From positions 124,001 to 188,000 of the forward strand of contig JBLDXI010000056.1 of NCBI GenBank assembly GCA_047495785.1: DNA of 64,000 nucleotides, given 5' to 3'. Below the pieces are notes generated by a model. It was not told the DNA's origin, made no database searches, and saw only the letters and a program-made list of their open reading frames with translations. This document shows, one piece after another, positions 3,801 to 11,390 of the stretch; the stretch's first letter is position 1; each line of letters opens with the position of its first letter. The stretch is from Lepidodermella squamata (taxonomy: Eukaryota > Animalia > Gastrotricha). The position numbers and the translations under genes were made by a program.

Positions 3801-5241
3801 CTTTCACGTGGTATAAGATTTGAGGTGGGCAACGCAACCGTTGTTACGATACAAAAACCTAGTTTTCACTAAGGTTTCATTTATTTTGATGAGATCAAGA
3901 CTGAGCAGCAATCGCCCAACTCAAATCTTATACCACGTGAAAGAGCAGCTCGCGTTCTATAGGCATGCAAAATTCGGTGAAAAAGTCAACCAATGCAAAA
4001 AGTCTTTGAGAAAGTCAACTTTGAATAAAAATGAAGATTTAGAAAATTTAGCTCGAGTGCTTTCTCTGGTCATTTTTTCTCTATGGGTTAGGGTTAGGGT
4101 TGGGGTTAGTTTTGAAAAAACTCATGTACAAATAGGGAAAAGGTACCACATAATTATGTGCAAATAGGGGCACCCTATTAAATTATCAGTTGATAGCGCT
4201 TTTTAGGTATGTTATTAGGAACGGGGATAAGAAAATGTTTCCAGAAATGATTCAATTTTTTAAATTTTGTCCCTGGAGCTTGAGGGTCAAGTTTATTTCA
4301 GATCTTCATTCCTCTTACGCAAGGAATGTGCCTCTTCGAATCTAATCACATTCAAAGAACTCAGTTCGTCTTTGATTTTGTAGGCCTTTTTGAAGTCTTC
4401 TTGTGATGATTTTCTCCGCCTGCTACAGCCGCGCCGAGAGCTGAGGCCGCTAGCGCTGAAGCAATGCTTGCAGCATGTTTATTGATATTATTCTCAAATT
4501 TGTCCTTCATCTTCCCATCCGCTGTCGTACCTCGAATTGCCTCGGCGTCACTAAAGTCTGTAGAGGGCAAAGTCACAAATAGATGCAGTAGGGAGTGAGA
4601 GAAGAAAAATGTACCACCAGGAATAATAAGACGAGAAATTTCTCCATTTATGCGCTTCAACTTGAATGAAGTAGTGAAAATTTAAATGAGTGTGTCGGTA
4701 TGCTCGCTGCTTGTCGCAAGTGCGTGAAGAGCGCAACTGTGCAAATTTCAACCATGCTATGACGATGTTTAATTATTATGAGTATCCTATATTTCATAGT
4801 CAAAGAAAACTCGAAATTAAAACCGTGAGAACATGAGAGATGAGAAAAATAAGTGGAAGCGGATTTTATGCGCGATCTAATGTGTTTGTTTTCCAGGTTA
4901 TCATGGCGACCAATCGAATTGAGACGCTCGATCCCGCCTTGATCCGCCCGGGTCGTATCGATCGCAAAATCGAGTTCCCGCTGCCGGATGAAAAAACGAA
5001 GCGCAAAATCTTCCAGATCCACACTGCGAAGATGACCATCGCCGAAGACGTCAACCTCGACGAGTACGTGACGACCAAGGACGATTTGTCCGGCGCCGAT
5101 ATCAAGGCCGTGTGCACCGAGGCTGGGTTGCTCGCCCTTCGCGAACGCCGTATGAAGGTCACGAACGACGATTTCCGTAAGGCTCGTGATTCGGTGTTGT
5201 ACCGCAAGAAGGAAGGCGCTCCTGAAGGTCTCTACTTGTAA
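819..5241 (+). CDS. PSMC1: 26S proteasome AAA-ATPase subunit Rpt2/S4; exons 819-1395, 2808-3214, 4897-5241 (442 aa)
   Basis: MG N-terminus, [15 protein letters not shown] coiled coil, Walker A GPPGTGKT, Walker [37 protein letters not shown] and HbYX C-terminus PEGLYL. GT/AG sites keep the frame (phase 1, then 0). Confidence 0.97.
3559..4173. mobile_element. Palindromic MITE/foldback-like element in PSMC1 intron 2
   Basis: The termini GTGCCTATTTGTACATAATCATGTGGTA and TACCACATAATTATGTGCAAATAGGGGCAC are inverted copies. There is a perfect 55-bp internal inverted repeat (3770-3824 vs 3920-3974) and no credible ORF. Confidence 0.8.
4361..4647 (-). pseudogene. Divergent, apparently frameshifted paralog of the secreted cationic peptide family (copy A), nested antisense in PSMC1 intron 2
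   Basis: Exon 1 (4647-4615) gives [11 protein letters not shown], 11 codons as in the other copies, followed by a 57-nt GT-AG intron (4614-4558). The in-frame continuation stops early ([16 protein letters not shown]). The shifted frame reads DAEAIRGTT...[13 protein letters not shown]. The family upstream motif is at 4734-4750. Confidence 0.55.
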
Positions 5242-5510
5242 AAGACGGCGAATTCCGACGCGCGAATGAATAGCTCAAAAGCTGTTATTATTCCGGATTT
5301 CGAACATTTATTACTATTGTACTACTATGCGTTCTTTATCTCTCTTTAACAGCCACCACGTAGCTCTAAAAAATACAACTTGTGTTATGACAATTTAGAC
5401 GTTGTGCGATGTGCTGAAACATGCGTGTCGGCTTCGATTTTCTCATTGAAAATGGGAAGTAAAAACAAATGATGGTTCGACAGAAAAATTTGATCACAGA
5501 TTTCACAAGA

Positions 5511-5516
5511 AATAAA
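5511..5516 (+). terminator. Likely PSMC1 polyadenylation signal
   Basis: AATAAA ~270 nt after the stop, followed by a T-rich tract. Confidence 0.55.
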
Positions 5517-6083
5517 GCGGAACTCTAAAACAAAATTGTTTCTTTCAATTTTTAGATTTATTTAACTTAATATATTTACTGTGACTCCATGGATTATCGA
5601 ACGATAATGGATCCAGACTAACTTGGTATTATATTACTTAATTATATTATAAGTGGTATTATATCATGTAATTGGTATTATAAGTAAACTTTCCCGACGT
5701 GTTTGGACTTACGGAAATATCTTATTTTCGGACTTTTTTCTGAAGAAAACTAACTTTCGTAGCGGTTTAACGGACAGGCGAAAGTTTCAGTAATTATCAG
5801 TAAATTCGATCGCTCGCGGCAGTGGTTTTTTTATGAAAATTTCCTAAAATTTCGCGAAAGCCGCTTGGTATAAGAAACTAAGAAGATAGAAATATAGCAA
5901 AGTCAAAATATCAAGAGGTCGCGATTGACTTTTTGCCGTTTCATTTATTTCATCATTCCACGAATGCTCCACTACTCCTATTGGGACCGTCGTTTTGTTG
6001 CTTAGCGTAATTTTCGACTAATTCAATGAATCGAAGAGTCTCGGTTCAGCGTTCCGGCCTCTGATGTCTGATCGCTGTGCTAC

Positions 6084-6210
6084 TCAAGTTTTCATTGCAA
6101 CCTTTGTGCCGGCATTGGGCACTTTTTTACTGACCTTCACCGATATTCCGCCAGTTAGATCACCATTTGTGCCAGTCCGTTAGCAATATGACAACCAACA
6201 CTTTGTTCAT
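6084..6210 (-). pseudogene. Deleted pseudogene of the secreted cationic peptide family (copy B)
   Basis: MNKVLVVILLT matches family exon 1, but the donor position reads GA and the frame stops at DWHKW*. The downstream remnant GGISVKVSKKVPNAGTKVAMKT* resembles the mature peptide of copy C. The flanks resemble copy C (CATCATTCCA near 5951 and 6801). Confidence 0.7.
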
Positions 6211-10150: not shown

Positions 10151-10379
10151 CTTTTAATATTGTCGGAAAAATGCTTTGTTCAATGATCGAATTCGGCATC
10201 AAAATCTCAAGACATGTCGAAAATTACGCCAATTTTGATTATATTGATTATACTTTTACTTGTAAACAGTTGAAATCCCAATAAGCTGCATTGACGACTT
10301 CACAATGTTTAATCAGTAGCCATCTCATTCTAAAAATTATTGACTCTTCAAACAACAAAACAGCATATCCACGTGTTGA

Positions 10380-11240
10380 TCATGCACCAATTTTCTCTTT
10401 AATTGTGGCTACGCCGGCCTTGACCTTATCGCTGGCGTTTTTAGCCTTTTTGTAAACATCTTTCACCTTGTCGACACCTTTCTTGACTTCAGCGGCGACT
10501 TTTTTCACCTTATCCGTTTCCTTTTTGATTTTCTTATTGGCGTCTAGTAGTTTGTGGACGATCTTCGTGGATCCGTTAGATGTGCGTGTGCGTTCCGATT
10601 CGACCGGTTCTTCGCCAGAGCGTTCGGCTTCTTTGGGTTTCGCAGGGATTTTCGCGACAGTCTTCTCCGCTCCGGAGGCCTTCACCTTCTCCGCGGCCTT
10701 TTTGACAAGATCCTGTGCGGCTCCTGCAACTCCTGAGGCTTTCACCTTCTCGGCAGCCTTTTTGACCATGTCTCCTGCGGCTTGCGCGGCTCCTGAGGTT
10801 TTCACCTTCTCGGCAACCTTTTTGGCAGTTTTCTTTGCTTTGTCGTAGTATTTCTTAACATCAATGTTGAAAATGCCAAAACCCCGCCGACTGGCCTCTT
10901 TGGGTTTCTCCGCAGTTTTCACGCCAGTACTGGGCTTTTTGCTGCTGGCCTTCGCCGCCTTGGTTGTTGTTGGGCCCGCTTTGTTGGTAGGCTTGGTTGC
11001 GACATTCGCTTGTTTAGTCGTTCTGTGGGCCGAGTTGCCCGGCCTATATGGACTAGGAGCCTTGCCACCGGATCGTATGTGATGGGCGGTTTGCTTGTCA
11101 CGAACGATGCGAGCTGCCTCCTCCTCCTCAGCGTATACAGCTACAACAGCCTGTTAGAAGAAGAAACATGAGAAATGCCATGTATGAGTGTTGTGCTATA
11201 GGCAAACCGCTAGCAAGACGACAATCAGCAATTTGTTCAT
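10380..11240 (-). CDS. Secreted multi-peptide precursor, copy E (267 aa), Lys/Ala-rich and amphipathic; exons 11240-11208, 11150-10380
   Basis: MNKLLIVVLLA|AVVAVYAEEEEAAR...KPKEASRR-GFGIFNIDVKKYYDKAKK...KPKEAER-SGEEPVESER-TRTS...KIGA*. The intron is 57 nt, and exon 2 is in frame with track ORF 10380-10922. Confidence 0.88.
10670..10825 (-). repeat. Coding tandem repeat, 60-nt (20-aa) period, ~2.5 copies (KKxAEKVKxSGxAxAAxDxV)
   Basis: TTCACCTTCTC recurs at 10681, 10741 and 10801. Confidence 0.9.
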
Positions 11241-11324
11241 TGCGGTAGAGAAAAAGTCTAGTCGAACCGAGATGATGTTTTTGCAGTAGAGCAGAAAGTG
11301 AAATTTCTCGGCGATTCGCCCGTC

Positions 11325-11390
11325 TTTTATAGCCTGCTAATCGGCAGTCACCTGTGCAAATTTCACTCACGCCAAGTTCACGTGAAAAGA
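11325..11390 (-). promoter_or_regulatory. Conserved proximal promoter of the peptide family (TATA, TGAAATTTGYACAGnTG motif, CACGTG)
   Basis: TATAAAA(A) near 11326, 9401 and 7355. CAnCTGTnCAAA(TTT) on + at 11349, 9425, 7382, 6296 and 4734. TTCACGTGAAA near 11377 and 9453. Confidence 0.6.

Follow-up and report, generated by a model that had tools for sequence, protein, structure and literature searches.

An orphan tandem family of predicted secreted, lysine-rich proteins with three intact members in the gastrotrich Lepidodermella squamata

We analysed a stretch of 64,000 nucleotides (nt) from the gastrotrich Lepidodermella squamata (NCBI GenBank assembly GCA_047495785.1, contig JBLDXI010000056.1, positions 124,001 to 188,000 of the forward strand), referred to below as the window; all coordinates are those of the window. 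Near one end of the window, on the minus strand, lies a cluster that, judged from its sequence, is a real orphan tandem family, three of its members intact, of Lys-rich proteins predicted to be secreted. The cluster is an array of predicted two-exon genes, here called copies A to E, of which A, B and C are intact, D is a relic and E is a doubtful distant member. Our preferred reading, to which we give somewhat less than an even chance, is that of a lineage-specific family of cationic proteins of host-defence or cytolytic type, which would be secreted and would bind membranes or polyanions. Their working parts would be Lys-rich amphipathic helices toward the C-terminal end of largely disordered proteins. 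A defensive or venom-like function, the interpretation offered in a preliminary description of this DNA, is plausible for such products.

Copy A (10380..11384, minus strand, like all copies) was intact, with exon 1 at 11240-11208 (11 codons), an intron of 57 nt at 11207-11151, and exon 2 at 11150-10380 (256 codons plus stop). Copy B (8887..9460) was open and truncated; its exon 1 lay at 9317-9285, its intron of 56 nt at 9284-9229, and its exon 2 at 9228-8887 (113 codons plus stop). Copy C (6884..7393), again intact, had exon 1 at 7271-7239, an intron of 58 nt at 7238-7181, and exon 2 at 7180-6884 (98 codons plus stop). The 33-nt pattern of exon 1 was found at three places in the window, one each in A, B and C and all on the minus strand, with 0-1 mismatches, and no occurrence was expected by chance. 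The introns of the three copies followed the scheme GTTTG[CT]...TAACAG with GT-AG borders and lay in phase 0. Exons 1 and 2 were in frame only with the intron removed, and the unspliced frames closed inside the intron or shortly past it. As the intron lengths vary by single bases, the frame needs their removal, and the unspliced frames close, these results indicate a real intron, and A, B and C look like real genes requiring splicing.

The preliminary description had given five loci a common first exon of 11 codons and four of them a phase-0 intron inside the signal peptide. Both features held for A, B and C. Copy D retained a homologue of the exon and did not share the intron, and copy E shared only 4 of the 11 residues of its hydrophobic exon 1 with A, and its frame closed early. 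Elsewhere in the window, a 52-nt GT..AG gap at 31278-31329 (minus strand) separated two open reading frames (ORFs) of a neighbouring gene, so introns of such small size also occur outside the cationic-protein family.

The predicted products of A, B and C were 267, 124 and 109 amino acids (aa) long and shared one order of parts: a signal-like hydrophobic start, 3-4 Glu followed by (A)AR, a basic spacer rich in Thr, Ser, Pro, Lys and Ala, the motif KPKEA(E/S)R, and Lys-rich modules. Read exon by exon, the N-terminus began with MNK, continued as a hydrophobic run spanning the splice site, and ended in V-Y-A. This arrangement fits the form of a cleavable signal peptide, with MNK as the n-region, a hydrophobic core of 13 residues, and V-Y-A at positions -3 to -1. 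Exon 2 of all three open copies began with AVVAVYA-EEE(E/G)(A)AR and went on into Cys-free, Lys-rich cargo, exactly as first described. Past the predicted cut, the chains of A, B and C had 249, 106 and 91 aa, respectively, with no Cys and no Trp. Their Lys content was 12-21%, their isoelectric point 10.1-10.4, and their net charge +34, +15 and +8, respectively. AlphaFold2 predicted the spacer of A (residues 23-97) to be disordered.

The motif KPKEA(E/S)R was observed four times: twice in A (KPKEASR at 10887..10907, minus strand, and KPKEAER at 10640-10620), once in B (KPKEAER at 9018-8998), and once in C (KPKEAER at 7003-6983). K-P-K-E-A-x-R was invariant in all four despite silent third-position differences. 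Each occurrence stood ahead of a Lys-rich module, with an acidic stretch intervening at the second one of A. In A, three tandem repeats of 60 nt (20 aa) with 63-100% identity lay at 10670..10849 (exon-2 residues ~98-158), and AlphaFold2 modelled these Lys/Ala-rich units as helices at exon-2 residues 98-116, 120-139 and 142-158. The C-terminal end of A was a predicted Lys-rich helix of 64 residues (10383..10577, exon-2 residues 192-255) with a heptad-like periodicity of 3.5 residues; its hydrophobic moment (muH) of 0.47 was matched by none of 500 shuffles. In C, a tail of 32 residues (6982-6887) came directly after KPKEAER and showed an amphipathic Lys-rich helix followed by an Ala-rich apolar end with Pro. 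Residues 67-86 of C had a muH of 0.72 at 99 degrees, matched by one of 500 shuffles; one face of this helix carried 7 Lys and the opposite face Val/Ile. The per-residue confidence of AlphaFold2 (pLDDT) was above 90 for residues 200-250 of A and 70-90 of C.

The upstream regions also carried common elements. A TATA box was observed 89-91 nt upstream of the ATG in A, B and C (11331-11326, 9407-9402 and 7360-7355, respectively). The motif TTTGNACAGNTG occurred five times in the window, all on the minus strand and 97-122 nt upstream of the five ATGs, compared with 0.2 occurrences expected for this pattern, which was fitted post hoc to all five sites. The sites were 11349-11360 in A (where the motif reads TTTGCACAGGTG), 9425-9436 in B, 7382-7393 in C, 6296-6307 in D, and 4734-4745 in E. 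Their core is an E-box-like CAGNTG, present in all copies as CAG[GAT]TG. A and B additionally had CACGTG at -144/-143 (11384-11379 and 9460-9455, respectively), 24 nt upstream of the shared motif. The shared motifs suggest common control by factors of the basic helix-loop-helix type, which may use these sites. On the 3' side, ATTAAA was found 67 nt past the stop of A, at 10313, and no AATAAA or ATTAAA was found within 300 nt of the stop in B and C.

The remaining two loci did not live up to the idea of a five-copy family, which was correct for A, B and C as intact copies. Copy D (5944..6307) consists of the promoter motif, the exon-1 homologue at ATG 6210, and faint traces of a C-like tail and 3' untranslated region (UTR). 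It was alignable with the family over only 44-49 nt of 5' UTR and exon 1 (E 7e-9 to 2.5e-8), and the weak colinear traces of the Lys-rich tail and 3' UTR of C had an E-value of 0.004. D lacked a TATA box, the shared intron and any open frame resembling those of the family, and the frame from ATG 6210 closed early. By these alignments, D is a degenerate relic resembling a shortened C.

Copy E (4361..4745) had an ATG at 4647, a hydrophobic exon of 11 codons at 4647-4615, and a GT-AG stretch of 57 nt at 4614-4558. Neither blastn nor tblastn detected coding similarity of E to the family. With the shared 57-nt intron its frame closed early, and its long ORF (4660-4361) sat in a different frame. An AATAAA was observed 64 nt past the stop of this long ORF, mirroring the ATTAAA of A. 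When the 5' module of A was used as a query, the motif site of E was the best match outside the family (16/17 nt), a result independent of the fitted pattern. Family membership of E appears weak and doubtful, and rests on the promoter motif.

Identity between copies differed strongly along the gene. Exon 1 was 94-97% identical, and the first 14 codons of exon 2 were 87-93% identical with a ratio of nonsynonymous to synonymous substitution rates (dN/dS) of 0-0.13. The introns showed 73-84% identity and the promoters 70-85%. The remainder of exon 2 was 63-73% identical, partly unalignable, with a dN/dS of 0.38-0.55. The low ratio in the signal and acidic part indicates that the export cassette is under purifying selection. 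The remainder of exon 2 diverged about as much as the intron, which indicates that the cargo evolves at a roughly neutral rate. The conserved signal with a divergent remainder that had been noted at first is clear from these values (87-97% against 63-73% identity).

The repeat unit of the cluster was about 2 kb. The alignment of A and B took in the promoter and the 3' flank as well as the 5' half of the gene; B had no counterpart of positions 10944-10153 of A, so its last codons lie in a former 3' flank. C shared with the family the 5' module and an island around KPKEAER. The 3' flank of B contained ~790 bases (7714-8505, minus strand) absent from unit A. The first part of these bases (~8480-7945, minus strand) resembles a non-LTR retrotransposon ORF at its 3' end, followed by an (AAAT)n tail, and is presumably a fragment of such an element, its frame being interrupted at least once; Pfam gave no match for the corresponding ORF (8164-8598). 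Conserved blocks in the 3' flanks of A and B simply belong to the duplicated unit and have neutral-level identity. Module gain in A, deletion in B, and decay of D and probably of E fit the birth-and-death evolution proposed for the cluster in the preliminary description.

The same history can be read as that of a lineage-specific cluster that arose recently, decays fast and now has little function or none, in which only the export signal would be constrained, or expression would be weak or absent. In favour of this, D is decayed and E doubtful, most of the cargo of B is gone and its frame runs on into former flank, AATAAA and ATTAAA are missing from B and C within the distance given above, the variable part has diverged as much as the intron, and no homologues were found. 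Three frames of 98-256 codons have nevertheless remained open at ~20-25% neutral (intron) divergence, and dN/dS is very low in the signal part and below 1 elsewhere. KPKEA(E/S)R was retained with silent changes, and the promoter motifs were retained as well. We consider this explanation quite unlikely.

Relatives of the family were searched for in several libraries, with the second exons as queries, the 11-codon exon 1 being shorter than the minimum of the tools. A word-indexed search of 5.8 billion proteins returned none for exon 2 of A (window of 141-448 aa) or of C (window of 54-171 aa). An exhaustive phmmer search of 1.84 billion representative proteins, with no length limit, found no relative of exon 2 of A. 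Whole exons and separate modules gave no family match in Pfam at E up to 10, where the HMMER filters discard most matches above ~0.1. No significant match to the exons or modules was found among the PDB sequences. The alignment-derived family pattern was absent from the metagenome, prokaryotic and viral contigs searched, and the back-translated AVVAVYAEEE pattern from the metagenome contigs. A literature search for the family motifs gave no relative; the one overlap, with filarial ALT proteins, was rejected as a chance run of 7 letters in the ALT signal peptide. As no relative appeared in any library searched (protein, Pfam, PDB-sequence, metagenome, prokaryote and viral collections), the family is lineage-specific as far as visible, in agreement with the earlier proposal.

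For the host-defence or cytolytic reading, the following course of events would apply. Transcription would start from the shared promoter, by way of CACGTG, the CAG[GA]TG within TTTGNACAGNTG, and the TATA box ~90 nt upstream of the ATG. The phase-0 intron of 56-58 nt, which splits the signal peptide, would then be removed, as frame logic and conservation suggest. The chain would be translocated and, according to the -3/-1 rule, cut by signal peptidase after V-Y-A. The Glu run next to the cut may hold positive charge off the signal peptide and so aid the export of a very basic chain. The Thr/Ser/Pro/Lys-rich spacer is predicted to remain disordered. The conserved KPKEA(E/S)R would mark the junction to the cargo and might be a cutting or recognition site. 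From their calculated amphipathicity, the cargo helices may bind anionic surfaces such as the membranes of microbes or other cells, in the manner of linear cationic host-defence and cytolytic peptides.

Several results weigh against this reading. The products have 109-267 aa and are not peptides; the name 'peptide precursors' used at first suits the cationic, Cys-free cargo, which is strongly amphipathic-helical in A and C, and does not suit the size of the products. The acidic pro-region that had been described could not be upheld. It consists of 3-4 Glu only, windows of 20 aa are positively charged from residue 10 on, and the spacer of 50-75 residues after the Glu run is itself basic, unlike classical anionic pro-pieces. 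The charge of the cargo is therefore not neutralised as in the classical pro-pieces of antimicrobial peptides. KPKEAER is no canonical furin or dibasic site, and a KR/RR/RK site ahead of a module was found only in A (RR). The tail of B was not amphipathic, its value being matched by 366 of 500 shuffles. The modules of A, built from repeats and with heptad periodicity, are hydrophilic (mean H -0.4 to -0.5) and would suit coiled-coil or matrix proteins too. The dN/dS of 0.38-0.55 in the variable part points to relaxed selection, and no positive selection was demonstrable; of the hypervariable cargo claimed at first, the divergence is true and diversifying selection could not be demonstrated. The best match of the C tail among the PDB sequences was the cecropin 2la2_A (38 aa), which was not significant (E 0.24, 14.9 bits, 11 of 26 ungapped columns identical), and the Cecropin profile (PF00272) gave no match to exon 2 of C or to its 32-aa tail at E up to 10 (hmmscan). 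Finally, the AlphaFold2 models were built without an alignment and had a predicted template modelling score (pTM) of 0.25-0.29; at this low pTM, a Foldseek comparison of both models with the PDB, which returned nothing at E 0.001, is uninformative.

A number of these results would be expected of an unprocessed secreted matrix, coat or protective protein (mucus, adhesive, egg-envelope, cuticle, or a protectant like the LEA proteins) acting whole through charge and self-association. We hold this role to be doubtful in itself, and it is nearly as likely as host defence. The absence of canonical convertase sites in products of 109-267 aa, the long disordered spacer of A and its three tandem repeats of 20 aa agree with it, as do the hydrophilic character of the helices and the coiled-coil-like 64-residue helix of A with its heptad periodicity. 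Abundant secretory products also typically have strong TATA promoters. Low-complexity, Lys/Ala-rich repeat helices that stay disordered until surface contact are likewise a feature of Group 3 LEA proteins and exchangeable apolipoproteins, and faint Pfam matches to Apo-CIII and Apo-CII were observed (E 1.3-5). Group 3 LEA was rejected: no LEA_4 match was obtained at E up to 10, nor one to any structural family, and the repeat is of 20 aa with periodicities of 3.96 and 3.50 and not an 11-mer. The net charge is strongly positive here and not balanced as in Group 3 LEA proteins. It also speaks against a matrix or coat role that the cargo differs fourfold in length and is not common to the copies, which is unusual for a structural component, and that the tail of C is an ideal cationic amphipathic helix of 20 residues.

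Among known effectors, insect cecropin clusters, for example the Drosophila Cec locus, contain several genes and pseudogenes. The present cluster is similarly a compact tandem array of intact copies and pseudogenes, with one short intron of ~60 nt per gene. Like cecropins, its products are Cys-free, Lys-rich and predicted to be secreted, and the tail of C is calculated to begin as a basic amphipathic helix and to run out into an apolar end containing Ala and Pro. The non-significant match of this tail to 2la2_A, free of gaps over its 26 columns, is the only lead to a named family. In contrast to cecropins, the signal peptide is split by the intron, the tail is preceded by KPKEAER and a basic spacer of 50-75 residues, and A and B carry quite different cargo. 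Mature cecropins of about 35-40 aa consist of a basic amphipathic N-terminal helix, a hinge and an apolar C-terminal helix; C was modelled without a hinge, its residues 61-97 forming one continuous helix. About 59 residues, including the basic spacer, separate the predicted signal cut from the tail of C, and A and B are longer, unlike the short cecropin precursor. The modules of A gave no cecropin-like match among the PDB sequences.

A more specific version would make the products host-defence polyproteins of an undescribed kind from a thinly sampled branch of animals, with a conserved export cassette (the intron-split signal and the Glu run), a basic and possibly glycosylated spacer, and one or two cationic helical modules freed at KPKEA(E/S)R as a new type of junction, C having converged on the cecropin design outside insects. 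We regard this version as unlikely.

The arminins of Hydra and the amphibian peptides of the preprodermaseptin type belong to multigene families of narrow taxonomic range, in which the signal region is conserved and followed by acidic residues and the cationic C-terminal part varies. The present family resembles them in its conserved signal region (87-97% identical, dN/dS 0-0.13) and variable cationic C-terminal part. In arminins and preprodermaseptins, a long anionic pro-piece offsets the charge of the cargo and the precursor is cut at a dibasic site, whereas here we observed only 3-4 Glu, a basic spacer and a junction ending in a single Arg, and none of the searches gave sequence similarity. 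The spider cytolytic peptides were rejected as relatives, as the Cupiennin profile (PF17563) matched over 10 residues only and at chance level (E 1.5, 9.5 bits against a cut-off of 27). Judged from these sequence features, the family would work most like linear cationic helical host-defence peptides, yet it fails membership of each known family where tested.

Precursors of signalling peptides of the neuropeptide or hormone type, from which short bioactive pieces are released, would share with the present proteins a signal peptide ahead of a largely disordered chain, and cleavage at a single basic residue could take place at the conserved internal motif, whose last residue is Arg. Repeated units flanked by dibasic sites and C-terminal Gly amidation signals are absent here. 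The would-be peptide is the least conserved part between copies, the opposite of receptor-matched signalling peptides, and such a role is highly improbable.

If the cluster does encode released membrane-active peptides, it would add a new, sequence-unrelated family to the innate-defence effectors of animals, and the precursor design, with a basic spacer and a non-dibasic junction motif, would be unusual. The gain of modules, deletion and decay seen within 7 kb would in addition make it a compact and clear case of birth-and-death evolution. If the products are unprocessed matrix proteins, the cluster would be one of the ordinary sets of secretory genes confined to a lineage. The locus also illustrates how ORF-based annotation may overlook orphan genes for secreted proteins when half of the signal peptide is encoded by a very short first exon, as the preliminary description proposed.

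Besides exons for fibrinogen/sushi, F5/8-C and C-lectin domains, the 64 kb contained genes of a proteasome AAA-ATPase, a formin, a FAT-like cadherin and a RhoGEF-PH protein. No matches were obtained when the window was scanned for Rfam families and tRNAs. Three ORFs of the window had no exact counterpart in the protein collections, from which the genome as a whole appears to be missing. The cluster occupies the gap between the proteasome and formin genes. The proteasome gene, of Rpt type, has exon ORFs at 819-1430, 2876-3286 and 4840-5241 on the plus strand, and its last intron, ~1.6 kb long, contains copy E in antisense. A short telomere-like run of ~3 CCCTAA units was seen within the same intron at ~4083-4110 (minus strand). 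The formin gene extends from 12779 to ~20506 on the plus strand, with a GBD/FH3-like ORF at 15166-15624 and FH2 exons at 16844-18217 and 19703-20506; its first-exon ORF has an N-terminus of the MGxxxS myristoylation type. Further along, at 26594-35538 (minus strand), exons for fibrinogen_C plus sushi, fibrinogen_C, F5/8 type C and C-type lectin domains were observed, which places lectin-like recognition genes in the neighbourhood of the cluster. The RhoGEF-PH ORF (741 codons, 61331-63556, minus strand) has a local GC content of 58% compared with ~43% for the window. Its sole relative among the 5.8 billion proteins, on ENA metagenome contig ERZ27332993 k141_1303728, was 58% identical, which suggests that the source lineage is poorly sampled.

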